Of a stretch of DNA of 64,000 nucleotides, positions 1,731-40,740 are shown in pieces (position 1 is the first letter of the stretch; each line of letters opens with the position of its first letter). The position numbers were made by a program, and so were the translations under genes. Below the pieces are notes generated by a model. The model saw only the letters and a program-made list of their open reading frames with translations. It did no database searches and was not told where the DNA came from. Source of the DNA: Malacoraja senta (taxonomy: Eukaryota); the NCBI GenBank assembly GCA_038087875.1, contig CM076001.1:1922001-1986000 (forward strand), read 5' to 3'.

Positions 1731-2052
1731 CCGGAATGGTGGTACTGTCGCTGGAACGCAGCTGACACATGATATTCCATCAACAACGCACGGTCCATCT
1801 TCGCGCCTGTTCTCATCCGCGGCAAGGCAGCTGAATAACAAGGTTTCAAAAGAAGAACTCAATACATAACCATAGTTGAAGTAGGTAGTGAACATTTTTA
1901 TTTCAGTTATTTTTACATGTATTCTCTCAGCTAATCAGCCTGCAGTTTTTGCATTCAGCCCAACGGTGTTTTATGAAACAAAATCTACCCTTTGCGTGAA
2001 ATAGCGATCTATGTTACAAAATAATAATGTCTATTTTCATCTGCAGTTCTCT

Positions 2053-2953: not shown

Positions 2954-3247
2954 CTGAAAGAGAATGAAAACAAAATATACATGCGCTTATCGCCTGATAA
3001 ATAACAGATCACATTCAACGATTCTCATGAATGAAGCCTGAACGGGTTAATCCGGACTTCCATTGATTATGATTGCAAATGGTGAGGTCGTTACAGTGCA
3101 ACCGTTGATTTGTTTGCTTGGACATAGGTCACCTGCCCATTCGAAATTCACCATTGATTTTGTCGACGAAATTACATTCAGAGAAGCGACATGGAAACTG
3201 TAAACAGGAGTTTTGAACACATTAAACCACCAGATAAGGCTTAATCA

Positions 3248-9400: not shown

Positions 9401-10255
9401 GTCGTTTGCCTCAAAGAATGTTTGCATCTGTTTAATAAGATATTCCTGACATGATCTTTCATTCAATATTTGTGGGTTAAATCTCCAATATGTTTGTTTC
9501 TTGGACATTCCATTTAATTTAATCATAAATGTTACCGGTGCGTGGTCTGAGATTATAATATTATGGTATTTTGAGTTATAAGTAAATGGGATAACCGTGG
9601 AGTCGACTAAAAAATAATCTATTCTTGAGTATGTTTTATGTACCGGTGAGTAAAATGAGTATTCCCGTCCAGTTGGGTTTTCAATTCTCCAGACATCCTT
9701 AATATTAGTGGTATTAATAAATGAATTTAAAAATACACTTGATTGAGATTTTACTTGTTTTTGCCTTGATGATCTATCTAAATAAGAGTCTAATGTGCAA
9801 TTGAAATCTCCTCCAATTATTAATTTATATTGTGTAAATTCAGGAATTATATTAAATATTTTATTAAAAAACATAGGATTATCAAAATTAGGTCCATATA
9901 CATTAAGAAGAATCACTTTTATCCCATTTAACTCTCCAACTAATATAATATATCTACCATCTATATCCGCTATTGTTGATGAATGTGTAAAAGGTATTCC
10001 TTTACGAATTAATATTGCAACTCCTCTGGACTTGTGTGAAAAAGAGGCATGATACGATTCAGCAATCCACGTAGCTTTAAGTCTATGTTGAGATTCCTTT
10101 TTAAGGTGTGTTTCTTGAAGGAATATTATATCTGTTTTGATTGAATTTAAATGTGCCAAAACTTTACCTCTCTTAATTGGTTCATTGATTCCCTTAACAT
10201 TCCAACTACAAAATGTTATTCCCTCACCCCCTCTTGTCATATTACCATCTTGCAT
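6440..10255 (-). pseudogene. L1 ORF2 (APE endonuclease, RT, C-terminal CCHC) with two in-frame nonsense codons
   Basis: SWNVKG, LQETHL, SDHAP, YADD and CDKC..HMFANC motifs. The three ORF-track pieces are in one frame, separated only by TAA at 7469-7471 and 6983-6985. Confidence 0.9.
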
Positions 10256-11290
10256 ATTGTTTCTAGGGTGGTCTATAGCCGAGCAGAAGGTACAACACAT
10301 AAAACCTGACCCTGCTCCCGAACCTCAAATAGATGAATTTTAAATAATATACATCGCTCTTCCGAACACATCTCCTTGAATTAACCTTGTAATTCCATTC
10401 AAACTTAAAATTATAACAATAGTTAAAGTGAAAAAAGTGATATAGATGATTAGTATAGGGTGAAAGAAAAAAAACTACAACTACTATTAGTGTAGTTAGT
10501 GTTAGCCACACTAGCATGGCTAGAATTCTAAAGACTTCCGTAGCCTTTGTAAAAGAAAAAAAATCCTAGCTCCGCGCTAAAAATTTTTTTTTTAAAAAGG
10601 ATGATATTTCTAACAATCAAATAACTTCTTTGGGAGTTGCAAAATTTTTGTTTTCTTTTCAAAGACCCAAAAAAGGTAAAGAACAGTAAAAGTTAACAAC
10701 GTTATTATTCTCTAAATACCATATTAATATCTTCTTTACGTATGTATTTTTAATTTTTAATTGAAAGATAAAGAGGAAAACCATCAACCCTTATTAATAC
10801 ATGGGCTAAATTACCTCTTACTTATATTCCTATGGAATATATGTATGTAATCTATTTCTACGTTAACCAGAAACTATTAGTTATTAATCATTGTTATTAT
10901 TCATACACGGTAAAAATATTTATGAATAATATAGATTTAGTAATTTTAATAGTAATAATGATATTTAATAAGTATTAGTAGTTACATGTATGGTTAAATA
11001 TGAAAATACTAAATAATAATAGTGATTAGTAACACTTGATAATTGTGATATTATTGTTCTTAGAATTTATACTAAACGCGAAGAATGAATAATTTAAAAA
11101 AAATGTAGAGAAATTAGGAGAAATTAAAAAATAAAAAATAAAAAACCCGAGAATCAAAAAAAACCAAGTTTTCTCCAATGTCCATTTCAATTTTCAAACG
11201 TCTTTAAAGCTCTTAAAAGTACTTTAAAGATCCTTTTAGACCTGGCGAGGTCCCGTTATTCCTTGACTCCTGAGGAGTAATGTATATTCT

Positions 11291-12361
11291 TCAGTCTGTG
11301 GTCACATTCCCGATACCTTTGGCAAATTCCAGTGCTTTTTCATGGTCTGTAAAAAATTGTTCCTTGCTCATGTAGGTGACTCTTAATGTTGCGGGATAAA
11401 GCAAGCCGTATCTCAAATTCGATATATTCTTCAGTATTCTTTTTGTTTCAGTAAACAGCGCTCTTTTCTTGAAGACCTCCGCCGGGTAGTCTCTGTAGAT
11501 ACTGATCCTCACTCCTTCAAAAGAGAGGTCTCTGGTACGGACAATTTTCTTCATTATCTCGTCAAATTCATGATCAAGTTGCACCTTTACTATAATTTGT
11601 CTTGGGTAGGCATCATCTCGTGTACGACGCCCCTGCGCTCTATGTGCTCGACCAAGTACAGGTTTTTGATCCAACTTTAAGGATTTTTGTAGTAGATCTG
11701 CCACAAAATCCCGAGTGCCCATAGCCCTCTCACTTCCTTCTTTCACACCTACAATTCTTAGGTTCTGGCGTCTTTGACGCCCCTCCAGGTCGATACACTT
11801 TCCACTTAATTTAGCCACCATTTCGGAGAGGCGTTGATTTTCGGTAAGGAGTCGATTTACCGTTTCCGCACTTGTCGCCACACATTTCTCAAGTTCAGTT
11901 ATCGCTATAATATGTTGCTTCAGTGTCTGAAGGATAGGGTCAATCTCTCCCTTAAGGCTCGATTCCACCAAAGCGATCCTGCCTTCCACCTCTTCCATCT
12001 GATCTTTGACCTCGTCGTCCCTCGACCTCTTCCAGATTTCCAATACATCCTGAACGGTAGAGAGCATTTCTGCTTTAAAATCTACCTTAAAAGAGTTAAG
12101 TTCCTCTTTAAGTTCCTCTTTAAAATTCAGCTTTCCTTCAAAGGTTTTCAGCTGTGTTTGAATATTTTTTATCTCATTGGAGATAACGTTTTTAAGTTCT
12201 TCCATTTCAGATTTTTTTTGTTTTGGTTTCTTCGATGGGTCTTCCTGGAGCATCGTTGTACCTGAGGCCGAGGCCTCGGTTGGGCCTACCCCTTCCGTCG
12301 GTTGTCTCGCTTTACCGGCTTTTTTTGTCACCCGGGGGGGGGGGGTATGTTGTATCGACAT
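11291..12361 (-). CDS. L1 ORF1p (coiled coil, RRM, CTD), intact, 356 aa
   Basis: Contains the conserved LEGRQRRQNLRIVG, RAHRA, RQIIVK, IYRDY and LLYPATLRVT motifs. Confidence 0.92.
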   Translation of the reverse strand: MSIQHTPPPRVTKKAGKARQPTEGVGPTEASASGTTMLQEDPSKKPKQKKSEMEELKNVISNEIKNIQTQLKTFEGKLNFKEELKEELNSFKVDFKAEMLSTVQDVLEIWKRSRDDEVKDQMEEVEGRIALVESSLKGEIDPILQTLKQHIIAITELEKCVATSAETVNRLLTENQRLSEMVAKLSGKCIDLEGRQRRQNLRIVGVKEGSERAMGTRDFVADLLQKSLKLDQKPVLGRAHRAQGRRTRDDAYPRQIIVKVQLDHEFDEIMKKIVRTRDLSFEGVRISIYRDYPAEVFKKRALFTETKRILKNISNLRYGLLYPATLRVTYMSKEQFFTDHEKALEFAKGIGNVTTD

Positions 12362-15169
12362 ACCGGCAAAGTCGCGCGCCTGATGACGTCACTCGCAGCA
12401 GGCAGCCGTTCAATTCGCAATCGCCTCAGGTAGGTCCCGATTTTTCTCCCGTTTTCGGATTTTTCAGCGCGGAGCTAGTTGACGCTGGGCTCAAGCCTCC
12501 ATAGCGCCACCGGAAGTCATATTAACTGAAATTTTAGCCCATAGATTAAGTTTAGTGATTCATAAATTAATACACCCTGACCAAACTGGCTTTATTCCAA
12601 AACGCTACTCATATTATAATTTGAAACGATTATTTAATATTATATACTCAAACAGAATAGCTAACTTAGATCTGGCAGTCATCTCGTTAGATGCTGAGAA
12701 TGCATTCGATCAAGTGGAATGGCCCTATTTATTTTCGGTGACGGAAACATTTCAATTGGGGGAGAAGTTTTGCACATGGGTTAAGCTTTTATACACTAAC
12801 CCAACAACTAGAATAATGACAAATCAAATGCTATCAACAAAATTGATTTATCTAAAGGTTGCAGATAAGGATGCCCGTTATCCCCGTTATTATTTGCCCT
12901 TGCTATCGAACCACTAGCAGAAAGAGTTAGAGCACATCCAGAAATATTTGGGTATAGCACTAAAAATACAGTTAATAATATCTCTCTATACGCAGACGTA
13001 TTATTATATATTATAAACCCAGAAATCAGCATTCCAAACTTGTTCAATCTTATAACTCTATTTGGTTCATTTTCGGGATATAGAATTATTTGGAATAAAA
13101 GTGAGATTATGCCAATAACGGAACCTAATTCATATATATTGCAACACTCACCTTTTAGAATAGTTAATGAAACATTTAAATACCTTGGAATTTATGTGAC
13201 AAAGAAATATAACTCTCTATTTAAATCAAATTTCATGCCTTTACTTAATAAATTGCATAAGAATATTCAATACTGGAAAACACTTCTCATTTCAATGCTC
13301 GGTAGAATTAATGCTATAAAAATAATTTTCCTTCCGCAATTGCTATACATCTTTCAATCAATCCCGATATATCTCCCCCAAATTTTTTTTAAATAAGTCG
13401 ACTGTATTGTGACAAGTTTTATTTGGGATTATAAGAATCACAGAATAAGCAAAAAACACCTATGTAAACCCAAGACCAAAGGAGGATTAGTTTTACCAAT
13501 TTTTATATCTTATTTTTGGGCAGTCAATGTCAAAAATATGAATTTTTGGTTGGAAGAAATGGATCATCAACCAGATTGGTTAAAGATGGAAAAGGAAGAG
13601 TGTTTGCCTTTTGAATTTGGTCCGATCCTGTTAGCTCCTACAAAATTGAATAAGAAAATCTATAGTGAAAACCCTATAATATATAGTGGCATTCGAATTT
13701 GGAAACAACTAAAAAGACATTAAAATTGGATAATTTATCATTTTCTCTCCCCATTGCAAATAATCCTTCATTTAAACCCTCAGTGTTGGATAAAGGTTTT
13801 GTACAATGAAAAAATCATGGAATTAAAAAGATGGGACATCTTTATAGAAACGGTATTTTTCTTTCGTTTCAGGAACTACAACAGAATTATGGATTACATT
13901 CAAATACTTTTTTTACATACTTACAACTTAAAGATTATGTTAAATCACATACACAAGAATACAGAACTAGAGAACCAGAGATTCTAGATGAATGTTTGAA
14001 TAAACACCCTAATACAGGTAAATTAATATCTTATATTTATAATATTCTTTTAGACAGTGAGACTCCGTCGACGGCATTATATAGATTAGCATGGGAAAAG
14101 GAATTAGCCCAACCTATAACAAAAGATATTTGGGATGAATGTTTACAACATATACATCAATGTTCATTAAATGCCAGACATTCTTCAACACAATTTAAAG
14201 TACTACATAGATTGCATTATTCAAAAACATAATTAAATAGAATCTTTCCTAATATCTCTCCTATTTGTAATAAATGCCAATACTCATCGGCTAATTTAAC
14301 CCATAACTTTGTAAATTGTATAAAAATTAAAGATTATTGGATGGATATTTTTTAAATAATCTCTGTAGTTGTTAATACTTAACTGGATCCCGATGCTAAA
14401 TTAATAATATTGGGCATAACAGAACAATATCTAAAACTTACAACAAACCAAATAAATTTCCTTGACTACAGTATAATAATTGGGATAAAATGAATATTAA
14501 AATGTTGGAGAAATCCTGCAACCCCCAAAATTAAGATGTGGATTATGGAGATGTCGGAAACCTTACATTTGGAAAAAATAGATATGTCTTAATTGACAAA
14601 CCAGAATTATTTACTAAAATATGGTCTCCATTTATAGATTATTTGAAGGGGTAGAATGGGCCGGCGCGGAGGCCTGACTGAAACCTGAACCCAGGACTGG
14701 ATGAATAGTTACGTTTTCTGACCTGTGGACCTATCTCCTAAGTTGTATTATTGATAGTTTTTCTTAATTTTCTAATTTCTTTTCTTCATTTTTATTATCT
14801 ATAAATATAAATAAATAATTAGAGGCAACGTTAATATGTAACCGATAAAGGAGGACCCCAGCTACTTTGGTAACTGGGTACCCGGAACCCTGGATACTTA
14901 ATATGTAATCGTTATACAACGTTTGTAATGGGTTGGACTATGATATGCAGATACCTCTAATACAAAATTTAAATATTTTTATAAAATAAGAATAAATTCA
15001 GTGTTAAAAAGGAATAGAAATAATAATGCTATAATGGTGAGGAACAATCATCGACATGGAACGATAACTCAATTTCCCCTCCGTGCATCCACCTCTGTCA
15101 CCAACATTAAATGTCACTACTTTTCTCTGTTTCTTCCACGACCAAAACACGTACGGTTCAGCATACTGT

Positions 15170-22393: not shown

Positions 22394-23019
22394 GTAAGAA
22401 GAGCGATTACTCTAAACAGTTGCATTTCCAGAGCATGTGCCTGACTGCATGAAGATCCAAGGAGTTAATTTCAAAGCAACATCGAACGGTTTGGTCATTC
22501 ATTTGTTATAGAAATATGACATCGTGTATGGTCCGCAACCCCATTAAGAAATGGGAACTGATAGTTTCATAAAATAGTTTGACGAAAAGCATATTTTGAG
22601 ATAAATGTCATCGGGAAAGTAAAGGCCAAGTAGTCACTTCCTACAGAGGACACATAAAACGTTCGTACCACTGAAAACTTGTCACATAATAGATGAATGA
22701 CGCGTTTACAAATGATACAGAGGATTAAAAACGATTTTACCAATGAAAGTACAACACAAGACAGTATATTACAAAATATATAAACATGTTGCTGTGGAGA
22801 GCGGCAATAAAATGTAGAATGAGATGAACAACATTGGCATTGGTTATAGTAATAGTGAATATTTATGTAGGATTTCCAGACGGTCAAACTCAATTTGCTA
22901 CGACAGGAATAATGTGCTCTTATTGTTGCCTAATTTTGTTGAAAAGTCGCTACGTATTCCCAAAGTCCTTTGTGTTTACTTTGTATTATCAAATCTTCAC
23001 TCACTATAATGTGTTCCAG

Positions 23020-23321
23020 GTCTGGTTGATTCAGATTCCGTCACCCAAGAGGAGGGTCCGCTCACACATACAGAGGGTCAAAGCGCCACTTTTACATGTA
23101 CCTATTCTAAGGATAATTATTACTTATACTGGTATCGCCAGTATCGTGGCGGACAGCCCGAGTTTGCGGTCCGGCGATACACTTCCGGTGCCTCTGACCT
23201 GAAGGCAGAATTCGCTCAAAATCGTTTTTCGGACTCAGTCCAGCAGTCGGAGAAAAAATATCGATTGACAATCTCGGGACTGCGTGTGACTGACACGGCA
23301 GTTTATTACTGCGCAGTAACT
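23020..23321 (+). CDS. T-cell receptor alpha/delta-type variable segment, open
   Basis: Acceptor ttccag|. Translation (G)LVDSDSVTQEEGPLTHTEGQSATFTCTYSKDNYYLYWYRQYRGGQPEFAVRRYTSGASDLKAEFAQNRFSDSVQQSEKKYRLTISGLRVTDTAVYYCAVT has the canonical Cys, WYRQ and DTAVYYC. Confidence 0.93.
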
Positions 23322-23360
23322 CACAGTGATGAGAATGGTGTATATACTCGTACAATAACT
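23322..23360 (+). other. Recombination signal sequence, 23-bp spacer
   Basis: CACAGTG (23322-23328), a 23-nt spacer, then ACAATAACT (23352-23360; 7/9 match to ACAAAAACC). Confidence 0.93.
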
Positions 23361-24117
23361 GATGTGCATTTCAAGCGCACAGCTGCTATCTCGTGGATGG
23401 ATGTCGTTCATTGCGGCTTGGGCAGCTGCCGCGAAATTCACAGCTTATGTGCGGGTAGGAGACGCAGTCAGAGAATAATTCACACAGTGACTTGACTCTG
23501 TCTATTTCTGGTTGTGACCGCCTGCTTTCTCGGAGCTATCTGGAAAAACCACTTCTCCATTGAAAATAAATTGACGCCAAACTCGTTCATTTAGGAGACC
23601 CACTGCTTCGCAAAAGAGAAACGTTCGTGCAATGAGGGAATAAATACTTCTTAAAGTATCTACGGCTAGAGAAACAGAAAGGAGGCCGATGAAGAGAAAA
23701 TAATGTAGATGCTTCTAAGTTAACCATGTTCTTGGTCTTGCTGTCAAACTCAGCGTGTATTAACTACTTATTGTGAACAGAATGTATTCCGGCTGGGGTG
23801 GCTGTGTTCTTGAAACACAGACTGATCAGAGCAGACAATGAAAACAAAACGATGGTCTTACCGAAGGAGAGGTTGAGGCAGTTGTTTCTTTACTGTACTA
23901 AGTATTTATGTTATCGTTTTATTAAAGAGTATTCATTTATTTCATAATTATCATGCTGGATAATTCACTCATCCATTTGTACTTCATTCGGAATTCCGCA
24001 TTCTAACCTAACAATATAACGACGGTAAGATAATCACTGTAGCCAGATATTTTGGTCAGGTTGAATAACAATTATACGCCTCCAAAATGCGATTGAAACA
24101 GCCGAGAGGGTTACAAT

Positions 24118-25264: not shown

Positions 25265-28200
25265 AATAGATACATAGAAACATAGAAAATAGGTGCAGGA
25301 GTAGGCCATTCGGCCCTTCGAGCCTGCACCACCATTCAATATGATCATGGCTGATCATCCAACTCAGTATCCTGTACCTGCCTTCGCTCCAGACCCCCTG
25401 ATACCCTTAGCCACAAGGACCACATCTAACTCCCGCTTAAATATAGCCAATGAACTGGCCTCAACTATCTTCTGTGGCAGAGAATCCCGCAGATTCACCA
25501 CTCTCTGTGTAAAAAATGATTTTCTCATCTCGGTCCGAAAAGACTTCCCCCTTTACCTTAAACTGTGACCCCTTGTTCTGGACTTCCCAAACATCGGGAA
25601 TAATCTTCCTGCATCTAGCCTGTCTAACCCCTTAAGAATTTTGCACGTTTCTATAAGATCCCCCCTCAATCTTCTAAATTCTAGCGAGTACAAGCCGAGT
25701 CTATCCAGTCTTTCTTCATATGAAAGTCCTGCCATCAGAGGAATCAGTCTGGTGAACCTTCTCTGTACTCCCTCTATGTCAAGAATATCTTTCCTCAGAT
25801 TAGGAGACCAAAACTGTACGCAATACTCCAGGTGTGGTCTCACTAAGACCCTGTACAACTGCAGTAGAACCTCCCTGCTCTTATACTCAAATCATTTTGA
25901 TATGAATGCTAACACACCATTCGCTTTCTTCACTGCCTGCTGCTCCTGCATGCCTACTTTCAATGACTGGTGTACCATGACACCCATCTCTCGTTGCATC
26001 TCCCCTTTTCCTAATCGGCCACCATTCATATAATAGTCTACTTTCCTGTTTTTGCCACCAAAGTGGATAACCTCACATTTATCCACATTATACTGCATCT
26101 GCCATGCATTTGCCCACTCTACCAACCTATCCAAGTCACATTGCAGCCTCCTAGTTCCTCCTCACAGATAACACTGCCCCCCAGCTTCGTGTCATCAGCA
26201 AACTTGGAGATGATGCATTCAATTCCCCCATCCAGATCATCAATATATATTGTAAATATCTGGAGTCCCAGCATTGAGCCTTGTGGTACCCAACTAGCCA
26301 CTGCCTGCCATTCTGAAAAGGACCCGTTTACTCCTACTCTTTGCTTCCTGTCTGCCAGCCAGTTCTCTATCCACATTAATACTGAACCCGGAATCTCTTA
26401 TGTGGGACCTTGTCGAAAGCCTTCTGAAAGTCCAGATATAACACATCCAATGGTTCTCCCTTATCCACTCTACTAGTTACATCCTCGAACAATTCTATGT
26501 TTCGTCAGACATGATTTACCTTTCATAAATCCATGCTGACTTTGTCCAATGAATTCACCACTTTCCAAATGTTCTGCTATCCCATCTTTAATAAATGACT
26601 CTAGCATTTCCTCCACTACAGATGTTAGACTAACTGGTCTGTAATTCCCCGTTTTCTCTCTCCCTCCCTTTTTAAAAAGTGGGGTTACATTAGCTTCCCT
26701 CCAATCCTCAGGAACTACTCCAGAATCTAAAGAGTTTTGAAAAATTATCACTAATGCATCCACTATTTCTGGGGCTACTTCCTTAAGTACTCTGGGATGC
26801 AACTTATCTGGCCCTGGGGATTTATCGGCCTTTAAACCATTCAATTTACCTAACACCACTTCCCGGCTAACCTGGATTTCACTCAGTTCATCTATCTCAT
26901 TTGACTCCCGGTCCCCTGCTATTTCCGGCAGATTAGTTATGTCTTCCATAGTGAAGCCAGAACCAAAGTAGTTTTTCAATTGGTCTGCCATGTCCTTGTT
27001 CCCCATGATCAATTCGCCTGTTTCTGACTGCAAGGGACCTACATTTGTTTTAACTAAACTTTTTCTCTTCACATATCTATAAAACTTTTGCAGTCAGTTT
27101 TTATGATCCCTGCCAGTTTTCTTTCATAATCTATTTTCCCTTTCCTAATTAAGCCCTTTGTCCTCCTCCGCTGGACTCTGAATTTCTCCCAGTACCCTGG
27201 TCGGCTGCTTTTTCTGGCTGATTTGTATGCTTCATCTTTTGTTTTGATACTATCCCTGGTTTCCCTTGTTATCCACCGATGCACTATCTTCCCTGATTTA
27301 TTATTTTTCCAAACTGGGATGAACAATTGTTGTAGTTCATCCATGCAATCTTTAAATGCCTTCCATTGCATATCTACCGTCAAACCTTTAACAATCAATT
27401 GCCAGTCTATCTTGGCCAATTCACGTTTCATACCCTCAAAGGTACCTTTCTTTATGTTCAGGACCCTTGTTTCTGGATTAACAATGTCACTCTCCACCCT
27501 AGTGAAGAACTCAACCATATTATGGTCACTCTTGCCCAAGGGGCTACGCACAACAAGACTGCTAACTATCCCTTCCTCATTACTCAATACCCAGTCTAGA
27601 ATAGCCTGCTCTCTCGTTGGTTCCTCTTCGTGTTGGTTTAGAAAACTATCCTACATGCTTTCCAAGAAATCCTCATCCTCAGCACCCCTGCCAATTTGAT
27701 TAACCCAATCTATATATAGATTGAAGTCACCCATTATAACTGTTTTACCTTTGTTGCACGCATTTCTAATTTCCTGTTTGATGCCATCACCAACTCCACT
27801 ACTACTGTTAGGTGGCCTGTACACAACTCCCACAAGCGTTTACTGCCCCTTAGTGTTTCGCAGCTCTACCCATATCGATTCCACATCCTCCAAGCTAATG
27901 TCCTTCTATTCTATTGCGTTGATCTCCTCTCTAACTAGCAACGCTACCCCACCTCCTTTTCCTTTCTGTCTATCCCTCCTGAATATTGAATATCCCTGGA
28001 TGTTCAGCTCCCAGACTTGGTCACCCTGCAGCCATGTCTCCGTGATCCCAACTATATCATATTCATTAACTGTCCGCACATTCAACTCATCCACCTTATT
28101 ACGAATGCTCCTTGCATTGAGACACAAAGCCTTCAGGCTTGTTTTTACAAACCTCTTACCCCTTATACAATTATGTTGAAAAGTGTCCCTTTTTGATTTT

Positions 28201-29525
28201 TGCCCTGGATTTGTCTGCCTGCCACTTTTACTTTTCACCTTGCCACCTATTGCTTCCACCCTCATTTTACACACCTCTGTCTCTCTGCTCTTGCACCCAC
28301 CCCCTGCCACATTAGTTTAAATCCTCCCCGACAGCACTAGCAAACACTCCCCCAAGGACATTGGTTCCATTCCAGCCCAGGTGCAGACCGTCCTGTTTGT
28401 ACTGGTCCCACCTCCCCCAGAACTGGTTCCAATGCCCTAGAAATTTCAATCCCTCCCCCAGAACTGGTTCCAATGCCCTAGAAATTTGAATCCCTCCCCC
28501 ATGCACCATTTTCAAGCCACGTATTCATCTGCAATATCCTCCTATTTCTACTCTGACTAGCCCGTGGCACTGGTAGTAATCCAGAGATTATTACCTTGGA
28601 GGTCCTACTTTTAAGTTTATCTCCTAGCTCCCTAAATGCACCTTGTAGGACCTCATCCCGTGTTCTACCTATATCGTTGGTGCCAATGTGCACCACGGCA
28701 ACTGGCTGTTCATCCTCCCCCTCCACAATGTTCTACAGCCGTTCAGTGACATCCCTGACCCTTGCACCAGGGAGGCAACATACCATCCTGTAGTCTCGTT
28801 TGCGGACGCAGAAACGACTATCTATTCCCCTTACAATTGAATCCCCCGTTATTATTACAGAGAGTGGTGAATCTCTGGAACTCTCTGCCACAGAGGGTAG
28901 TTGAGGCCAGTTCATCGGCTATATTTAAGAGGGAGTTAGATGTGGCCCTTGTAGCTAAAGGGATCAGGGGGTATGGAGAGAAGGCAGGTACGGGATACTG
29001 AGTTGGATGATCAGCCATGATCATATTGAATGGCGGTGCAGGCTCGAAAGGCCGAATGGCCTACTCCTGCACCTATTTTCTATGTATCTATGTATCTATT
29101 ATAGCCCTTCCACTCTTTTTCCTCCCCTCCTGTGCCGCAGAGCCACCCATGGTGCCATGAACTTGGCTGTTGCTGCTTTCCCCTGATGAGCCATCTCCCC
29201 CAACAGTGTCCAAAATGGTATATCTGTTTAGGAGGTAGATGACCGCAGGGGACTCCTGCACTACCTGCCTACTGCTACGCGGGCTAATGGCCACCCGTTC
29301 CCTTTCTGTCCGCTTAACTTTTACCTGCGGTGTGGCCAACTCACTGCATGTGCTACTCACGACTTTCTCAGCATCGTGGATGCTCCAGTATGAATCCAAC
29401 CGCAGCTCCAATCGTTCAATGCGGTCTGCCAGGAGCTGCAGCTGGACACAATTCCTGCAAACGTAGTTACCAGGGACACCGGCCATATCCCTGATCTCCC
29501 ACATGTTGCAGGATGAGCAAACCAT
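25265..29525 (-). mobile_element. Near full-length CR1 LINE (ORF1 zinc finger and SGNH esterase; ORF2 EN and RT), disrupted
   Basis: ORF1 MVCSSC...CRNC, GDSIVRG, CLPGA, VVHIGTND; ORF2 CLNARSIRNK, VGITETWL, SDHN, QHGFMKGKSC, KFADD; (TTTCTATG)-type tail. A 41-bp tandem duplication lies at 28411-28500. Confidence 0.92.
28856..29096 (+). mobile_element. Short CR1 3' fragment nested antisense in CR1 ORF1
   Basis: CR1 3' end and tail; interrupts the host RAII|TGDS; probable TSD tattat at 28850-28855 and 29097-29102. Confidence 0.8.
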
Positions 29526-29624
29526 GGGGCCATGGATTAACTGAGACAAACGGTGGATGGGCCTTAGCCGACTGTATGTGGTCAATTTGTTCTGAATAGC
29601 TAGCATCCGGTCAGTGAAGACGTT

Positions 29625-31528
29625 TCAGTTCAAGCACAGAGCAGACCGATAACTGAGTTCACGCAGAGTGCAGACCGACAATCAAGTTCAAGCACAATGC
29701 AAACCAACAATTGAGTTCAAGCACAATGCAGACACGATTGTGTTCAAGCACAGTAGTGACCAACAATTGAGTTTAAAAAAAGAGCAGACCAACAATTGTG
29801 TTCAAGCACAGTGAAGACCAACATTTGAGTTCGAGCATAGTGCAGACCAACGATTCAGTTCAAGCACAATACAGACCAATAATTCAGTTCAAGCACAGTG
29901 CAGACCAACATTTGAGTTCAAACATAGTGCAGACCAACAATTCAGTTCAAGCACAATAAAGACCAACAATTCAGTTCAAGCACAGTGCAGACCAACATTT
30001 CAGTTCAAGCACAATACAGACCAATAATTCATTTCAAGCACAATACAGACCAACAATTCAGTTCAAACACAGTGCAGCCCAACAATTCAGTTCAAGCACA
30101 GTGCAGACCAACAATTCAGTTCAAGCACAATACAGACGAACAATTCAGTTCAAGCACAATACAGACCAATAATTCAGTTCAAGCACAATACAGACCAACA
30201 ATTCAGTTCAAACACAGTGCAGCCCAACAATTCAGTTCAAGCACAGTGCAGACCAACAATTCAGGTCAAGCACAATACAGACCAATAATTCAGTTCAAAC
30301 ACAGTGCAGCCCAACAATTCAGTTCAAGCACAGTGCAGACCAACAATTCAGGTCAAGCACAATACAGACCAATAATTCAGTTCAAACACAGTGCAGCCCA
30401 ACAATTCAGTTCCAGCACAGTGCTGACCAATAATTCTGTTCAAGCACAGTGCAGACCAACAATTAAGTTCAAGCACAGTGCAGACCAACATTAAAGTTCA
30501 AGCACAGTGCAGACCAACAATCAAGTTCAAGCACTGTGCAGACCAACAATCAAGTTCAAGCACAGTGCAGACCAACAATCAAGTTCAAGCAGAGTGCAGA
30601 CCAACAATTCAGTTCAAGCACAGTGCAGCCCAACAATTCAGTTCGAGCACAGTGCTGACCAATAATTCTGTTGAAGCACAGTGCAGACCAACAATCAAGT
30701 TCAAGCACAGTGCAGACCAAAAATTAAGTACAAGCACAGTGCAGACCAACATTAAATTTCAAGCACAGTGCAGACCGATAACTCAGTTCAAGCACAGCGC
30801 AGACCAACAATTAAGTTCAAGCACAGTGTAGACCAACATTTCATTTCAAGCACAGTACAGACCAACAATTCATTTCAAGCACAGTGCTGTCCAACAATTC
30901 AGTTCAAGCACAGTGCAGACCATTAATTCAGTTCAAGCACAGTGCAGACAAACAATTCGTTTCATGCACAGTACAGTCCAACAATTCAGTTCAAGCACAG
31001 TGCAGACCAACAATTCACTTCAAGCACAGTGCAGAACAACAATTCAGATCAAGCACAGTGCAGACCAACAATTCAGTTCAAGTACAGTAGTGCTGACCAA
31101 CAATTCCGTTCAAGCACAGTGCAGACCAACAATGCAGTTCAAGCACAGTGCAGACCAACAATTGTGTTGAAGCACAGTGCAGACCAACAATTCAGTTCAA
31201 GTACAATAGTGCTGACCAGCAATTCCGTTCAAACACATTGCAGACCAAAAATTTTGATCAAGCACAGTGAAGAACAACAATTCAGTTCAAGCACAGTGCA
31301 GACCAACAATTCAGTTCAAGCACAGTGCAGACCAACAATTCTGTTCTAACACAGTGCAGAACAATAATTCTGTTCAAGCACAGTGCAGACCAACAATTCA
31401 GATCAAGCACAGTGCAGACCAACAATTCAGTTCAAGCACAGTGCAGACCAACAATTCATTTCAAGCACAGTGCAGACCAACAATTCAGTTCAAGCACAGT
31501 GCAGACCAACAATCAGTTCCAGCACAGT
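29625..31528. repeat. 29-bp tandem satellite (~65 units), consensus CACAGTGCAGACCAACAATTCAGTTCAAG
   Basis: Direct tandem periodicity is visible, with a recurrent variant CACAATA and trimer (87-bp) blocks around 30210-30430. Confidence 0.97.
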
Positions 31529-31529
31529 A

Positions 31530-31790
31530 ATATTTTTGTTAAGTTCTGGGCACCATGTTATAGGATGTATATTGTCAAGCTTGAAAGGGTTCAGAAAAGA
31601 TTTACGAGCATGTTTCCTGGACGAGAGGGTGTGAGCTATGAGGAGAGATTCTGTAGGCTGGGTCCCTATTTCATGGAGTGCAGGAACATGAGGGTTGTTC
31701 TTATAGAGATGTACAAAGTATAGAGGATAAGATCGGGAAGATGCAGAGTCTATTTCTAGAGTAGGTGCATCGAGGACCAGAGATCATAGG
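31530..31790 (+). mobile_element. CR1 RT C-terminal fragment
   Basis: FWAPCYRMYIVKLERVQKRFTSMFPG...MRVVLIEMYKV. Confidence 0.8.
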
Positions 31791-32427: not shown

Positions 32428-32775
32428 ATGACATCTGTAAGCTTTCTACTGAATTTCCGAGGTCGATTTGAAGGAGAAATGGGTCGGATGCACATGTCGG
32501 TTCAATATTATTATTACCCAATCCTGGCATCAATTGGAGTACCCGGTATGCCACTCGATGGTTGAATGTGGGATAACCGTGACGATAATTTGATTGGGAA
32601 GCGGTAACGTTGAAGATAAAGTTAAAATAATGTGACAAATGTACTAGATACTCGGCTGCATTCAGGGAATGGGATTTGCGGAATAACCAGAAGATAATGT
32701 AGTTATTGTATGGTTTTAATGCATTTCGCCGTTGCCGTTTACTGGGACTGGTAGAGAATGCTCCTTGCAATATTG

Positions 32776-32807
<32 letters not shown>

Positions 32808-35800
32808 TTATTAGAAGTACATTACATTACAACCACATACATTAATACTCGTAATTTGTATCTTCTTACAATTAATGTACTCCCTTTATTATTTTTTTTT
32901 TTTTACACTAGAAAAGGAAAAGATTGAAAGAGAGAAGAAAGTGAAGGAAAAAGTGAAAGCGTAGAAAAGTGTAGAAAATGTAACAACAAAAAAGGACGAA
33001 GACCCTATAAGAGCGAAATTAAAAACAAAAGAAAAAGAGTTAAGAAATAGGCCCTAGGAAAAAAAAGAGAAAAAGAGAGAGGAAAAAAAAAAAGAAAAAC
33101 AAATATTTTTTTGAGCATTACGTAAATAGGACATACCAACTCTTCAACTATCATCCCCCCTTACCCTGCCCTCAATTTTTTATTTTTTTTAAAGTACTTT
33201 TGCACCCTATGTTTGTAATAATTCTATAAATGCAGACCACGTCAGGTGGAAGTGATCTGGTTTACCTGCTAGGAGAAGTCTTATCTCTTCTAGTTGTAGT
33301 GTTTCAAACATAATTGAAATCCACATATTTATAGTTGGTATTGGAGCCTTCTTCCAAAATTTTAGAATTAGCTTTTTTCCAGTTATTAACCCATAGTCCA
33401 TTAATTTCTTTTGAAACACATTTAGTTCTGGATCATCTTCCGTTATTCCGAAGATAATCCATTCTGCTTTGGGTATCAGTCTTGTTTTAAATAACTTTGT
33501 AAAGATTTCAAAAATTTCATTCCAAAATTTTTGAATTTTTGTACAGAAGACGAATGAGTGCGCTATAGTAGCTTCTTGGGATTGACATTTATCACAAATA
33601 GATGATACGTTTGGGAAAATTTTATGAATTTTAGTTTTCGAATAATATAATCTATGTAAAATTTTAAATTGTATTAAAGTGTGTCTTACATTAATCGAGC
33701 ATTTATGCACGTTTAATAAGTATTCATTCCAACTTTCCTTTGAAATTTTAATAGCTAACTCTTGTTCCCAGTCTCTTCTGATACCCTCCGTAGGTGGTAT
33801 TTGTACATTTAAAATAATATTATACAAATATGATATTAAGTTTGCTGATTCCGCTTTTATCTGCATTGCCTCGTCCAATACATCTACTGGGTTATTATAA
33901 TGATCTTTTGTATATTTTTTCAAATAGTCGCATATTTGAAAATATTTAAAATATTGATTATTTCCGAGTTTATATTTTATTTGTAATTGTTGAAATGAAA
34001 GTAATTTTCCAGTTTCATACAAGTCACCAAGCGTTTTAATTCCTAGTCTATCCCATTGTGTATAAGCTTTATCTATAATAGAAGGACTAAACGAAGGGTT
34101 ATTGACTATAGGTAATAAAAGTGATAAATTTCTTAATTTTAAATTTTGTTTTATTTGTTTCCAAATACGGATTGTACTATGAATAATTGGGTTCTTATTA
34201 TAATTTATGTTATTCAGTTTCATTGGAGAGAGGAGGATCGCTCCAATGTTTCTAGAGGAGCAATCCTCTTTCTCCATTACAATCCAGTCTACTTGCTGGG
34301 CGGAGTTATCCATCAGTTGAATCATGTTTTTAATATTTACTGACCAATAATAATACATAAAATTAGGTAGTGCTAAACCCCCCAATACTTTAGGTTTATT
34401 CAGATGAGTTTTTTGTATTCCATGAGATTTATAGTCCCATATAAAATTAGTGATATCTGAGTCGAGTTTTTTAAAAAACTTCTTTGGTAAGTATATAGGA
34501 ATTGATTGAAATAGGTATAAAATTTGTGGTAAAAAGATCATTTTTATTGCGTTAATTCGGCCTATTAAAGACATCGGGAGCGTTTTCCAGAATTTAATTA
34601 GTGTATTTAATTTATAAAGTAGGGGGTCAAAATTTGCCCTGAACATACCTTGATATGTTCTGGTAATTTCGACCCCCAAATATTTAAATTTTTCTGTAGC
34701 TATTTTAAAAGGGAATTTTAAAAGATGTGTTGAATCTTTCGGTTTTATTGACATAATTTCACTTTTATTCCAATTTATTCTATATCCAGAAAAAGATCCA
34801 AAGTCTTCAATTAAATTTAATATATTTGGTATAGTGATTTGAGGTTTTGTTATATACAGTAATATATCATCCGCGTATAAAGATATTTTATTATATGAGT
34901 CTTTAGTATTATATCCATGAATATCAGGGTGTATTCTAATTTTTTCTGCTAGCGGTTCAATAATGAGAGCAAACAGCTGTGGTGATAATGAGCATCCTTG
35001 TCTATTTCCCCTTGATAGTTGAAATTTCGAGGATAATATGTTATTAGTTAGTATTCTAGCTGTAGGTTTGTTATATAGTAACTTAATCCATAAAATAAAA
35101 TTCTCTCCCAGTTGAAATTTTTGTAATACTTTATCCATATAATTCCATTCTACTTGATCAAATGCTTTTTCAGCATCCAGCGAAATAATTGATAATCCTT
35201 GATCTTCAGATTTGTGTGAGTGCATTATGTTGAGTAGACGTCTCATATTATTAGAAGAGTATCTCTTAGGGATAAACCCTGTCTGATCTGGGTTTATTAA
35301 TTTACTAATGTATTTACTTAATCTTCTAGCTAATGTTTTCGCTAATATTTTTTGATCTGTGTTTAACAATGCTATAGCTCTATATGAACCAGGTTCTTCT
35401 AAATCTTTATTTTTCTTAGGTATTAATGTAATCGTTGATTCCGCTAATGTATCAGGTAGTATTCGTTTTTTAAAAGCGTATTGGTACATTTTTTGTAATC
35501 TTGGTATTAGTTTATCATAAAAGCTTTTATAAAATTCATTAGTAAATCCATCAGGGCCTGGTGTTTTTCCATTCTTTAATGAGTTTATTGTATCTTCTAA
35601 TTCCTTAATTGAGATTTGTGCACCCAGTTCCTCTTGTTCCTTCAGCTCTAACTTTGGAAGATTACAGGTATCCAAGAACTTTGTGATATTATCGGAATCA
35701 ATTATCGTTTTAGATGTATACAAATTCTCGTAAAATTGCGCAAATCTTTTATTAATATCCTTCGGTGTTGTTAATAATTCCCCTTTATCTGATTTGATCT

Positions 35801-38800
35801 TTGGTATAGTATGTTCCTTTTCTCGTTTTTTTAGCTGGCGAGCCAAAAGTTTATGCGGTTTATCCCCAAATTCAAAGTGCTCTTGTTTTGTCATTTGAAA
35901 AAGTCTTAAAAGTTTGGCAGATAATAATGTATTTAATTTAAATTTTAAAATTATTATTTTATTATGTTTATCTATTGATGGATCTTTAGCATTATCTATA
36001 TCCATTTGTCTAATAAGTTCTTCTAACTGTCTTTGTTCATTCTTATTCTTTTTATTTTGAAAAGCTTGATATGAAATTATAATACCCCTAATGTATGCTT
36101 TAAAAGATTCCCAAAATAAAGTAGGCGATATATCTGAAGTATCATTTGTTTGAAAAAAGACCTCCATTTGTTCTTTTAAATATATACTCGCTTGTGGATC
36201 TTTTAAAATTTGAGAATTAAATCTCCAGAACGATTTATTCTTAGACAATCCTTCCAGTTTTAAAAAGAAAGTTAGTGGGGAATGGTCTGAAATTGAATTT
36301 GTATGGTATATTGCATTAGATGTTTGGGGGATTAATTTTGTATCCAGCAGAAAGTAGTCTATACGTGAGTATGTCTTATGTACCATTGAGTAAAACGAAT
36401 ATTCCCTGCCAGTTGGATTAACAATTCTCCAAACATCTGCTATATTAGTGTTATTTATATAGGTATTGAGGAGTTCCCCAGTTTTCGATTTCATATTCCC
36501 TCTCTGTTTTGGACTTGATTTATCTAAGTACGGGTCTAAAACACAGTTAAAGTCTGCTCCTATTATAACATTTTGATAGTTTGACTCTGCAATTATGTTG
36601 AAAATGTTATTGAAAAAGTGGGGGTTATCAAAGTTAGGGGCATATATATTTACCAAAGTAAGTGGAGTGTCATGGATTTCTCCATTAACTATTAGGTATC
36701 TCCCTTCTATATCTGTTATAATATTCTTTGCTTTAAATGGTATACCTTTTCTTATGATGATTGACGTGCCTCTAGATTTTGAAGTAAATGAAGAATGGTA
36801 TGTTTGACCTATCCATTTCGCCCTCAGACTAACTTGGTCCTGAGGTTTTAGGTGTGTTTCTTGTAGGAAGGTAATGTCAGAGTTGTACAGTTTCAGCTGA
36901 GCTAGTATCTTACCCCTTTTAATAGGTTCGTTAATACCTCTTATATTCCAACTACAAAATGAGATTCCTCCTAGGTTCTTTTGTGTGGTGTCATGCATTT
37001 TGAATAATTATAGTACCTTTGAATCTTGTGGTGCGTCCATATCCCAGGTCTTTAGGTATTGGCGGAGTTTTTGAATTATTAAATTTTGCTGGTATGTCCA
37101 TTTTACGCTTATCACTAAACACAAAACACAAACAAGTGGTTTTATGTGGTAAAAAAAACTAAAAAAGTGAGGCTACAGTGTCTAATATAGTCGGCACTGT
37201 AGCGAGTGTCCCACCTGTAGGTGGGAAAAAACCTTGTTTTGATTTCCATTGCGTTGTTACACAAATAGCTCCGCTCTCTTAGTTAATCATAGCATATTAA
37301 AATATTAAAACGAGGCCTCACATTCAGATATATAATACAATTTTACCCTGATATTTCCTTATAACATATATATATATCGGAGTTTAATTATTAAACCAAT
37401 ATTTTTGACTTCAATAAGAATCAACTGTTGGTTGAAGGGGTTAACGAGACGTGCCCCTGGACATAAGCCAGGTGCTCGTTTCTCATCCCCTCCTCCCACT
37501 TATAGATAAGGTTACAATTTATTAAAAATTCATATTAGTATGTTAGTTCATTATTTTTTCTTTTTGTTTTTGTTAGTATTCTAATCTAACCTACATAACT
37601 TGTTAAGTTGTTAATAGGATAATTTCTTACAATTGGTTATAATATTTTAATCAATAAGCAATTTTCTGGTTTATATTCCAACTGTTCAGTTGTTTACACG
37701 TTTTGAACAGAAAATGTCCTTGATTCAACATTCCAAAGATAACAGTGTAACTATCCCCAGACAAAGCATTGCTTAGACTGGTACAGATCTGCCAAAACTC
37801 CCTTTCATTTCTGTTTTTCAACGATAGTTTGGGCATATTTGAATGCGTCTTCAGGCTTAACAAATGACTTTTCAAGACCATTAAAGAAAATACGCATTTT
37901 CGCGGGGTAAAAAACCCCAAATCTGATCCCTTCTCTCCCTCTTAAAAGATCATTAACCTTATCAAATTTGTTTCTTTTTTGCACAATTTCATACGGGTAG
38001 TCCCTGAATATCTTAATAGTGTCCTTGTCCATCCGCAGTTGTACACCGTATTTGATTTTGCTCATAACATATTCCAGTTCTACAGTATCCCGAAATTTCA
38101 CAATAATATGTCGTGGATAAGCTTTTCCCGCACCAGATCTTTGTTTAAATCTTGGGACACGATGAGCCACTTCGATTTTCGGTTCCTTGGAAAGATTCAA
38201 CAGTTGTTTCAACATCTTATCCATTTTCTCTGATAGTCCATCTTTCACCTCATCAATTCGTTTATTCATAATGTCCAGTAAATCCATCATATTCTTCTGG
38301 TTACCAGCGTTTAAACCCTTCATCATCTTCTCCATTCCTTCCATCATTTTTGCCGTATTTTCCCTCATTTCCTTCTTATCTTCCATCCTATTTTCCTTCA
38401 TTTCCTTCTTATCTTCCTTCGTATTATCCGAAATCTCATCTTTCAAATTTTTCATTGATTTCTTCAAGTCATCAAAGTCTTTCTTAGATCTTGTATCCAT
38501 TTCTGCAGCCACTTCGGAGACTTCAGAGGTAACTTCAGAAGTAACTTCTGCTTCAGACTTATTCTGGTCTTTCAGCAGCTTTTTCACTGCTCTCTGAGGG
38601 CTCACAGCTGGAGACAGTTTACTCCTTTAAATGGCTTCAAACCACCGTTTAAAACATCGCGTTTAACGATGACGTCATCAGCGCGATGACCAGAAGCTCC
38701 GGTAAGGTTTTTAAAAACAATCCCGATTTCTGGACCCGTTGTACAGGATAAATCGTGAAGTTTTTCGGGAGAGGAGCTAGGTGCACGTCTGTTAGTCTAA

Positions 38801-40507
38801 CATGACGCCACATGTCGGTTCAATATTATTATTACCCAATCCTGGCATCAATTGGTGTACCCGGTATGTCACTTGACGGCTGTATGTGGGATAACCGTGA
38901 CGGCAATTGCTTGGGAAGCGGTAATGTTGAGAATAAAGTGAAAATAGTGCGGCAAAATTTGCTAAATGCTCGGCTGCATCCACGGAAGGTTTGGGGTATA
39001 ACCAGAAGATAATGTAGTTAGTGTATGGTTTTAATATATTTCACCGTTTGCCGTTTACTGGGACTGGTATAGAATGATTATTGCAATATTGTTAAGTGAA
39101 GTAACAGCCAAAGTAGGTTGAGCGACAAAGGCTGTATGTGCTTATACCTCGGGCGATTGCATTTCCCGCATCTATTATTGATTCCATATGTCGTCCCTTT
39201 TAACGGCTTTAAATTTCGTTAATTTTCATTGTGGACTTTCTTCAACGACCACCGCATCGCATGCAGGTAATTTCCACTGTACACCGCCCCTGCAAATGTT
39301 GCAAACCCATAAGCAAATGCTGATCCGAAAGGTGCACCCGATTAACACTAACTTCAGTCGTGTTATTCACTCTACACTTCCGTTCAAACTGTTTCTCAGT
39401 TGATTAATTGACTGTTAGATGGAATGTTTGTTCGTGAGCACAGGATCAGGTATTCAAACCAAAGGAAATATCTGTCCATGCCGTCCTTTTAGCAAGGTTA
39501 GGAAATTAAAGCAACTTAACAATATGTACCCACCATCATTCAACTCGAAGTTCTTCCGTCCATATATTCACCATTGCTTCTTTCTTACTCCCCTAGTGAA
39601 TCTACTGGCCATTGTGGTCCTGACCCGAGGAAAGTGCGGTCTCTCCAAATGCATCACCTGTTACCTGGTGGCTATGGCGACGGCGGACCTCTCCGTGATT
39701 GTCTTCGAAGTGATTTTAAATCAAATTGCCGTTCTTTATTGGCAGAACACAATCCTGTTCTTTACTCCTGTGTGCAGGTGTATTCTGTTCCTGTCCGCCG
39801 CGGCCGTAGACTGTTCCGTTTGGTTCACGGTGGCTTTCACATTTGATAGGTTCGTGGCCATCTCCAACCAGAATCTGAGATCCAGATACTGCACCGACAG
39901 AAACGCGGCGGTGATTATTGTGACCCTATGTATCTTCTTCTGTATACAGAACGCTCCCTGGCCTTTCGCTTATAATTCTTTCCACAAGTATAATGGTTTA
40001 CTGTGGGGCTGCGGAATCCGATCGGACTTCTATGTCCTGCCATCATGGATCGCATTTTCTTGGACCGAGCCGCTGTTGACCCCAGTGATTCCGTTCTGTT
40101 TGATCGTGTTGTTTAATGCGCACACGGCGAGATGTATTGTAATGGCCAATCGGGTCCGCAGGAGGCTCCGCGATCTCAGTCGTGGAGACCCGGAGACGGA
40201 AAGCCGTAAACGGTCCATAATATTACTCTTTGCAATCTCCAGCAGCTTTATCCTGCTCTGGGTCACAACTGTATCTCATTTTGTGTTCTCTCGATGTGTC
40301 AACGGAATGTGGGTGAGAGGTTTCACTAACACATTATCAACATTCGAAAAAACGGGAGTTCTGCTGCAGCTGTTGAACACCTGTACAAATACACTAATTT
40401 ACACCGTCACCCAGGAGAAGTTCAGAGAGCAGCTCCTTCACGCACTTCAATGCCCCGTCGCGCTAATTAGAAAGTTAGTTAAACTTCCCAAACCCTGTTC
40501 AAAATGA
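32428..40507 (+). CDS. GPR139/142-like class A GPCR, paralogue 2; exon 1A 32428-32545 joined to exon 2 39597-40507 (342 aa); the intron contains a full-length L1
   Basis: Exon 1 MTSVSFLLNFRGRFEGEMGRMHMSVQYYYYPILASIGVP G|gtatgc; acceptor cccctag|TG AAT. Seven-TM pattern with FTFDRFVAI and CTNTLIY. Exon sizes are identical to paralogue 3. Confidence 0.8.
33207..36998 (-). CDS. L1 ORF2p, uninterrupted, 1263 aa
   Basis: SWNIRG, LQETHL, SDHSP, QGCSLSP, LYADD and CDKC...HSFVFC motifs in a single ORF. Confidence 0.95.
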   Translation of the reverse strand: MHDTTQKNLGGISFCSWNIRGINEPIKRGKILAQLKLYNSDITFLQETHLKPQDQVSLRAKWIGQTYHSSFTSKSRGTSIIIRKGIPFKAKNIITDIEGRYLIVNGEIHDTPLTLVNIYAPNFDNPHFFNNIFNIIAESNYQNVIIGADFNCVLDPYLDKSSPKQRGNMKSKTGELLNTYINNTNIADVWRIVNPTGREYSFYSMVHKTYSRIDYFLLDTKLIPQTSNAIYHTNSISDHSPLTFFLKLEGLSKNKSFWRFNSQILKDPQASIYLKEQMEVFFQTNDTSDISPTLFWESFKAYIRGIIISYQAFQNKKNKNEQRQLEELIRQMDIDNAKDPSIDKHNKIIILKFKLNTLLSAKLLRLFQMTKQEHFEFGDKPHKLLARQLKKREKEHTIPKIKSDKGELLTTPKDINKRFAQFYENLYTSKTIIDSDNITKFLDTCNLPKLELKEQEELGAQISIKELEDTINSLKNGKTPGPDGFTNEFYKSFYDKLIPRLQKMYQYAFKKRILPDTLAESTITLIPKKNKDLEEPGSYRAIALLNTDQKILAKTLARRLSKYISKLINPDQTGFIPKRYSSNNMRRLLNIMHSHKSEDQGLSIISLDAEKAFDQVEWNYMDKVLQKFQLGENFILWIKLLYNKPTARILTNNILSSKFQLSRGNRQGCSLSPQLFALIIEPLAEKIRIHPDIHGYNTKDSYNKISLYADDILLYITKPQITIPNILNLIEDFGSFSGYRINWNKSEIMSIKPKDSTHLLKFPFKIATEKFKYLGVEITRTYQGMFRANFDPLLYKLNTLIKFWKTLPMSLIGRINAIKMIFLPQILYLFQSIPIYLPKKFFKKLDSDITNFIWDYKSHGIQKTHLNKPKVLGGLALPNFMYYYWSVNIKNMIQLMDNSAQQVDWIVMEKEDCSSRNIGAILLSPMKLNNINYNKNPIIHSTIRIWKQIKQNLKLRNLSLLLPIVNNPSFSPSIIDKAYTQWDRLGIKTLGDLYETGKLLSFQQLQIKYKLGNNQYFKYFQICDYLKKYTKDHYNNPVDVLDEAMQIKAESANLISYLYNIILNVQIPPTEGIRRDWEQELAIKISKESWNEYLLNVHKCSINVRHTLIQFKILHRLYYSKTKIHKIFPNVSSICDKCQSQEATIAHSFVFCTKIQKFWNEIFEIFTKLFKTRLIPKAEWIIFGITEDDPELNVFQKKLMDYGLITGKKLILKFWKKAPIPTINMWISIMFETLQLEEIRLLLAGKPDHFHLTWSAFIELLQT
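37805..38605 (-). pseudogene. L1 ORF1, apparently internally deleted in frame (266 aa)
   Basis: Has VAHRV, RHIIVKF, IFRDY and VFYPAKMRI but lacks the LE.R.RR.NLRI.G block present in the other ORF1; the ORF opens on GTG. Confidence 0.7.
38812..38863 (+). CDS. Duplicated, 5'-truncated GPCR exon 1 (exon 1B) abutting the L1 5' end
   Basis: ATG TCG GTT CAA TAT...GTA CCC G|gtatgt encodes MSVQYYYYPILASIGVP, in frame with exon 2 at 39597. Confidence 0.75.
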
Positions 40508-40589: not shown

Positions 40590-40740
40590 TCATAGAAACA
40601 TAGAAATTAGGCGCAGGAGTAGGCCATTCGGCCCTTCGAGCCTGCACCGCCATTCAATATGATCATGGCTGATCATCCAACTCAGTATCCCGTACCTGCC
40701 TTCTCTCCATACCCTCTGATCCCTTTAGCCACAAGGGCCA
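40590..40740 (-). mobile_element. CR1 3'UTR stub
   Basis: catagaaacatagaaa tail plus a 3'UTR nearly identical to 25270-25420. Confidence 0.85.

Follow-up and report, generated by a model that had tools for sequence, protein, structure and literature searches.

In the genome of the skate Malacoraja senta, a full-length L1 retrotransposon stands in a GPR139-like G-protein-coupled receptor (GPCR) gene, and each end of the element abuts a copy of the same segment of about 285 bp, which includes part of exon 1 and its splice donor. The question raised by this locus is how such a segment came to lie on both sides of a single mobile element, and how the differences between its two copies arose. The window, that is, the whole stretch of 64,000 nucleotides that was analysed, corresponds to positions 1,922,001-1,986,000 of CM076001.1 in the assembly GCA_038087875.1, and all positions given below are those of the window. 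The left and right copies of the segment are denoted A and B, respectively, and a further GPR139-like gene downstream is denoted paralogue C. The feature is real; the most likely interpretation is that of an L1 insertion whose target duplication is long and mosaic.

Geometry of the duplication and the L1 element

As listed in Table 1, copies A and B flank the L1 directly. They are homologous from end to end, both beginning with CACATG and finishing with GCAATATTGTT, and their alignment has an identity of 86.5% over 289 columns (BLAST, E ~1e-93). This alignment confirms an earlier reading of the same DNA from its letters only (hereafter, the sequence-only reading), which had described homologous flanks of ~285 bp with the same CACATG start and the same end. 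Copy A ends with GTT and is followed by poly(T), and copy B starts right after the L1 5' untranslated region (UTR) and ends with GTT followed by AAGTG. The TT/AA junction reported in the same reading, where the left copy runs into the poly(A) and the right copy is followed by AA, can be read directly at these two places. Judged by its sequence, GTT/AA is an acceptable L1 endonuclease site. The T run on the window strand comes directly after GCAATATTG, as for an L1 tail at a TT/AA-type site. The two repeats abut both ends of the L1 exactly, and the repeat on the poly(A) side lies at the nick, which is the arrangement of a long target-site duplication (TSD).

The element was assigned to L1 from its open reading frame (ORF) 2, which carries an APE-type endonuclease domain (Exo_endo_phos, 3.7e-14, residues 15-239) and a reverse transcriptase domain (RVT_1, 1.7e-39, residues 526-778). 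The sole Pfam match of the 266-aa ORF1 was a sub-threshold, coiled-coil-like one, and no match to Transposase_22 was obtained for it.

The read evidence consists of Logan contigs, which are mostly 100-500 bp long at the receptor/L1 locus and come from runs whose type is unknown or probably DNA. Read depth was evaluated in four runs from three species, namely two samples of the same species (X1 and X2) and two related species. The word depth of the L1 family, counted on contigs with a similarity of 90% or more to the 5' 800 bp of the element, is ~3e5 in the two same-species samples, compared to ~25-35 for unique DNA, and it is ~0 in the two related species. The family sequence in the read depth extends up to ~38808, and, among the sites listed, the 5' 800 bp of the element has a private base only at 38625. 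The L1 is young, as shown by its intact ORFs, its pure A-tail, and its near-identical copies, which are very numerous in the same species and nearly missing from the two relatives.

A second L1, which belongs to another family and is ~66% identical to the studied L1, lies at ~6076-12518 with a perfect 17-bp TSD (6059-6075 / 12519-12535). This TSD fits the range of 17-20 bp that the sequence-only reading had given for the other L1s of the window. A further L1 fragment, in the opposite orientation, occupies 12519-14544.

Table 1. Coordinates of the features at the receptor/L1 locus and of paralogue C in the window.
Feature	Position	Strand	Remarks
Exon 1A of the GPR139-like receptor gene	32428-32545	+	ATG at 32428; donor GT at 32546; phase 1; native upstream region
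Left copy A	32491-32777	+	last 55 bp of exon 1, donor and 232 bp of intron; native to this gene lineage
Full-length L1	32778-38808	-	6,031 bp; both ORFs intact
L1 poly(A)	32778-32802	-	pure A-tail of 25-27 nt; T run at 32776-32802 on the window strand
L1 ORF2	33207-36998	-	1,263 aa, uninterrupted; Exo_endo_phos and RVT_1
L1 ORF1	37805-38605	-	266 aa
L1 5' UTR	~38606-38808	-	~200 bp
Right copy B	38809-39093	+	
Left native block of B	38809-38868	+	59/60 identical to A; carries candidate exon 1B and its donor
Candidate exon 1B	38812-38863	+	ATG at 38812; donor at 38864; same frame as exon 1A
Paralogue-C-like patch of B	38869-39080	+	39 columns where B equals C and not A
Right native block of B	39081-39093	+	13/13 identical to A; mismatches C at 39086 and 39091
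First-strand nick site (inferred)	39092-39095	.	TT/AA; the target reads GTT/AA from both copies
Rest of intron 1	39094-39596	+	runs on from B to exon 2
Exon 2	39597-40507	+	starts after AG; frame intact; 7tm_1
Paralogue C gene with upstream region	53681-55582	+	third GPR139-like copy
Donor-like tract in paralogue C	53941-54152	+	matches the patch of B

Mosaic composition of the right copy

The identity between A and B is only 86.5% because B is a mosaic. The alignment contains 40 mismatched columns, and 39 of them fall inside 38869-39080. In this patch, 177 of the 216 columns match A (82%), and 215 of the 217 sites match C (99%); the only two differences from C in its 212 bp are at sites private to C, 38898 and 39005. 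The background identity between B and C is 88.1% over 1,796 columns. The perfect B-C runs are 106, 80, and 41 bp long in the patch and at most 44 bp elsewhere (in exon 2), and the B-C divergence is back at ~12% immediately past 39093. The patch therefore has the properties of a gene-conversion tract, namely near-identity far above the background, divergence on both sides, and a donor that is present. The patch is real. In two other samples, 38910-39000 has a word depth about double that of unique DNA, which indicates two genomic copies of the C-like middle, and contigs with zero differences cross the right edge of B (39056-39171 and 39046-39171).

The 73 bp that lie outside the patch contain a single A-B difference. 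The derived and ancestral states were assigned using the two closest genes of Amblyraja radiata (loci L001 and L002), each with a flank of 10 kb on each side. The bases at 38812, 38821, and 39086 are derived and common to A and B only, where C and both A. radiata genes have the ancestral base; the base at 38811 is private to C. These shared derived bases and the single difference in 73 bp indicate that A and B are the closest relatives of each other in the blocks that were not overwritten. The sole difference between the native blocks is at 38856, where a T is private to B and an A is found elsewhere. This T has a low depth in sample X2 and appears in no X1 contig, so it may be polymorphic or may have been lost in contig assembly.

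The middle of A, which is the counterpart of the patch, has a rate of lineage-specific change of 8.3%, compared to 6.5% for the part of intron 1 beyond B, as expected if both were once contiguous in one gene. The divergence from C is also alike on the two sides of the L1, with 89% identity to C for the upstream region of A and 88% for the intron of B. In the same blocks, the A-C and B-C identities range from 85 to 95%, and in the neighbouring non-coding DNA from 88 to 89%. At the other edge of the patch, the native block beside the nick is 8-13 bp long, which is the normal size of a TSD, because B mismatches C at 39086 and 39091.

Four other accounts of the patch were considered and set aside. 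Hypermutation of an exposed single strand does not apply, as the A-B differences mix transitions, transversions, and four indels, and B equals C at each of them. A transfer from B to C is rejected under the TSD model, since B would then still equal A. It is unlikely that the patch is native to both A and B and that A alone was altered, since this requires a second conversion with an anchor of 8-13 bp before the poly(T). It is also unlikely that polishing made B artificially C-like, given the two-copy depth of the C-like middle described above.

Origin of the duplication and of its mosaic

It is probable that one L1 insertion made the duplication, as a long TSD, and that the patch came from paralogue C, either by later gene conversion or during the insertion itself. 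An L1-made duplication is the best-supported explanation because the geometry is exact, the nick site fits, the L1 is young, and A and B share derived bases. With the match of the native blocks, these points give partial support to the giant TSD proposed in the sequence-only reading; about 212 of the 285 bp of B are paralogue-C sequence and no copy of A, so that a giant TSD is not by itself a full description of the locus. We infer that a single event made the duplication and that the transfer ran from C to B.

The proposed course of events is as follows. A full-length L1, antisense to the gene, would have inserted into intron 1 of a single GPR139-like gene. The L1 endonuclease would have nicked the target at GTT/AA, and reverse transcription would have been primed there; the poly(A) would abut the left copy because reverse transcription began at this nick. 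After the insertion, 285 bp of target would have stood on both sides of the L1 as a long TSD, compared to the usual 13-20 bp. In the conventional version, a C-to-B gene conversion soon after the insertion would have brought in ~212-260 bp from paralogue C, 15 kb downstream, leaving as native sequence in B only the first 12-59 bp and the last 8-13 bp. As a result, an additional partial exon 1, with a good donor and no promoter, would stand against the L1 5' UTR. This version, in which the patch is a later gene conversion, is put forward tentatively. As in interparalogue gene conversion in tandem families, the tract of ~220 bp is 99% identical in an 88% background and has its donor 15 kb away in cis. 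Unlike the usual case, the tract does not extend beyond the duplicated copy, and it stops one normal TSD length short of the nick.

L1 insertions are known to produce long TSDs. L1 TSDs of more than 100 bp account for up to ~10% of events in HeLa cells and for most events in cells deficient in nucleotide excision repair (Servant et al., Genetics 2017, PMC5223499); this study tabulates TSDs of 242, 275, and 277 bp and cites Gilbert 2002/2005 and Symer 2002. The skate locus resembles these cell-culture cases in its polyadenylated L1, its site of the TTTT/A type, and its direct repeats of hundreds of bp. However, the cell-culture insertions are engineered, mostly 5'-truncated, and found in cell lines, and their repeats are taken as identical, whereas the skate L1 is full-length and germline, part of a coding exon and its donor were duplicated, and one repeat carries a paralogue patch. 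Duplications of 1-10 kb at L1 insertions in tumours and in induced-L1 clones have also been regarded as large TSDs (bioRxiv 10.1101/2024.12.14.628481). As in those tumour duplications, the skate repeat lies at the L1 insertion site, and new synthesis would have produced the copy at the 5' junction. The tumour cases differ in that they are 1-10 kb long and somatic and that an ectopic template is unreported for them; the skate mosaic, if it was formed during the insertion, would be the trace of templated synthesis. Most records of long L1 target duplications come from cell culture and tumours, and the present case is in the germline of a cartilaginous fish.

Several points weigh against the L1-made duplication. 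Neither an empty allele nor a close orthologue was found in the A. radiata loci or the Logan contigs, and the exact product of the exon-2 ORF has no record in public assemblies. The two closest A. radiata loci, with their 10 kb flanks, contain neither a one-to-one orthologue nor an empty site; this species is too diverged to provide them, because the paralogues are closer within species than between species. Among the contigs listed, none crosses 38808/38809. The A-B identity rests on 73 of the 285 bp, and a TSD of 285 bp is itself uncommon. In addition, two coincidences must be assumed for a later conversion. Genes with an identity of only 88%, which show no further long tract of recent origin, must have undergone conversion very recently, and the converted tract must fall entirely within the TSD copy, with its end 8-13 bp from the edge of that copy.

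A single event would cover what otherwise takes these two coincidences if the mosaic was laid down during the same L1 insertion, with the long TSD formed by homology-templated repair synthesis at the 5' junction and not by a wide stagger. Such a course is somewhat unlikely in our estimation. In this case, the stagger would be of ~13 bp (39081-39093), and the end would prime a copy of ~212-260 nt from paralogue C, 15 kb away. Within 38822-38868, the synthesis would then return to the native template, from which the last 12-59 nt would be copied, and the product would be joined to the L1 cDNA. The positions of both edges of the patch agree with these steps. The C-like sequence starts 8-13 bp from the nick, a normal TSD length, and the retained block keeps the two mismatches with C (39086 and 39091), as a primer would, with the 5 nt beside the patch matching C perfectly. 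The other switch falls in the longest stretch identical between A and C, the 47 bp of exon at 38822-38868. The patch and the insertion also look equally young (2/212 and 1/73 differences), but these counts give no relative dating of the two. In this process, the end must invade a template of only 88% identity, and the synthesis must change templates twice before it jumps to the cDNA. Templated extension of this kind corresponds to the break-induced replication that has been proposed for large TSDs (bioRxiv 10.1101/2024.12.14.628481).

The distinction between the two versions bears on the origin of long TSDs, which is unsettled between a distant second nick and repair synthesis from the reciprocal end. 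At this locus, the source of each base can be traced because the duplicated piece lies in a multi-copy gene, and the mosaic is of interest since it may record the mechanism. If the patch arose during the insertion, it would give direct support to the repair-synthesis model, and the locus would be a natural footprint of long-TSD formation.

Deletions mediated by L1 insertion, or associated with L1 recombination, were reportedly described by Gilbert in 2002 and by Han in 2005 and 2008, and the flanks A and B can also be considered in this way. They would then be the 5' parts of two recent tandem genes that were fused by an L1 insertion-associated deletion or by L1-L1 recombination. The rest of gene A, the spacer, and the promoter and first 22 codons of gene B would have been lost, leaving an apparent overlap of 285 bp. 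In favour of this, the window holds at least three related units of a tandem GPCR cluster at this locus, the homology boundaries at the L1 ends would follow trivially, and deletions are known at L1 insertion sites (PMC5223499; bioRxiv 10.1101/2024.12.14.628481). As in those cases, the L1 here would lie between sequences that were formerly not adjacent. However, the known deletions lack TSDs and removed unique DNA, whereas the skate flanks overlap by 285 bp and share derived bases. The flanks are also not as diverged as the other paralogue pairs; with three shared derived bases and 1/73 differences, compared to 11-13% for A-C and B-C, the two genes would have to be very recent duplicates. The size of the deletion must then have been very nearly that of one repeat unit (roughly 10-15 kb) less 285 bp, and L1-associated deletions are expected to be under 10 kb (bioRxiv 10.1101/2024.12.14.628481), which counts against it. 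One extra duplication is required, and the C-derived patch is still required. The fusion of two tandem genes was the case that the sequence-only reading had named as refuting its own proposal. In the form of long-separate genes, it is contradicted by the shared derived bases; in the form of very recent duplicates it survives as a less economical and, in our judgement, improbable explanation.

An assembly artefact, either a mis-join through the high-copy young L1 or a false haplotypic duplication, would draw on the thousands of near-identical copies of the family and on the L1 5' junction, which none of the contigs listed bridges, but it is very improbable, as both flanks come from one gene, are oriented alike, and have private derived bases in common, which is unexpected for random L1 flanks, as the junction of the L1 5' end with CACATG is absent from any simple haplotype with a normal insertion, and as the right boundary of B and the two-copy depth of the C-like middle recur in two other samples.

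Transduction by the L1 was also considered. A 3' transduction was rejected, as no second poly(A) is found beyond the left copy. A 5' transduction from an L1 in a paralogue was rejected, as it would require a chance landing at the homologous nucleotide of the receptor gene.

In A. radiata, locus L002 has an insertion of ~350 bp (~10283-10640) located 5 bp from the homologue of the GTT/AA nick site, and the BLAST pieces on its two sides overlap by ~14 bp of target (window 54170-54183). The intron spot near GTT/AA may be a recurrent insertion site.

The receptor gene, candidate exon 1B and neighbouring sequence

The gene carrying the L1 is a GPR139-like class A GPCR, with a 7tm_1 domain on exon 2 (Pfam, 8e-18), an intact frame, and two exons split in the first transmembrane segment (TM1), as in the annotated relatives. 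The exon 2 product is 86% (98% coverage) and 80% identical to A. radiata proteins annotated as 'probable GPR139', and the N-termini encoded by exon 1 align with those of the A. radiata homologues. The gene retains its native promoter, an intact exon 1A, and an intact exon 2, and intron 1 is longer by 6.3 kb. The antisense L1 in intron 1 contributes three AATAAA motifs on the strand of the receptor gene.

The exon layout of the sequence-only reading, with exon 1A beside its native upstream region and a short exon 1B lying against the L1 5' UTR, was recovered in the present analysis. The 22 residues by which exon 1B was said to be shorter hold from the ATG at 32428; the annotated A. radiata homologues start at the ATG equivalent to 32479 (MGR/MSR...), and from that start the exon 1B product is shorter by only 5 aa. 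Its ATG at 38812 is derived and present in A and B only, the codon being TTG in C and one A. radiata gene and TCG in the other. Exon 1B has an A at -3 of this ATG and the donor GTATGT, and it is without a promoter of its own and without an upstream acceptor. That the gene has two candidate first exons is only a possibility, and the use of exon 1B would need antisense transcription out of the L1 5' UTR.

Chimeric transcripts from an L1 antisense promoter have reportedly been described in humans, by Speek in 2001 and Nigumann in 2002. As in the human case, the skate L1 5' end faces a downstream exon with a donor, and it could drive an mRNA of exon 1B joined to exon 2. Unlike the human case, the 5' UTR of the skate L1 is only ~200 bp long, and we know of no antisense promoter for this L1. 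The locus illustrates how a single retrotransposition can place a second start codon and splice donor against the 5' end of a mobile element and leave the original gene intact. An alternative first exon could evolve from the duplicated exon 1B.

The start of exon 2 (39547-39728, TM1-TM2) has a word depth of ~2,000-4,900 in X1 and up to ~57,000 in a related species, compared to ~30 for unique DNA, which indicates a very large GPR139-like receptor family in skates. Among the GPR139-like genes, there are V-set genes, similar to T-cell receptor V genes, in the window (22942-23855) and in L002 (1-1502 and 17131-18031), with 85% DNA identity. Since V-set and GPR139-like genes are interleaved in this skate and in A. 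radiata, the arrangement is conserved.

Just upstream of the receptor gene, a tandem satellite extends over ~26000-31700 with a strong negative GC skew, and it gives spurious ORFs that repeat a unit of ~28 residues (...QAQCRPTIQFKHSADQQFSSSTVQTNNS...). Between the genes carrying B and C, ORFs are found at 50577-52794 around two masked N runs (51275-52012 and 52025-52767). A short interspersed element at 40591-40727 has a word depth of 1.6e7-4e7 in the four runs of three species, and copies of it occur in both A. radiata loci, for example at 12972-13103 in L001 and 16761-16899 in L002.

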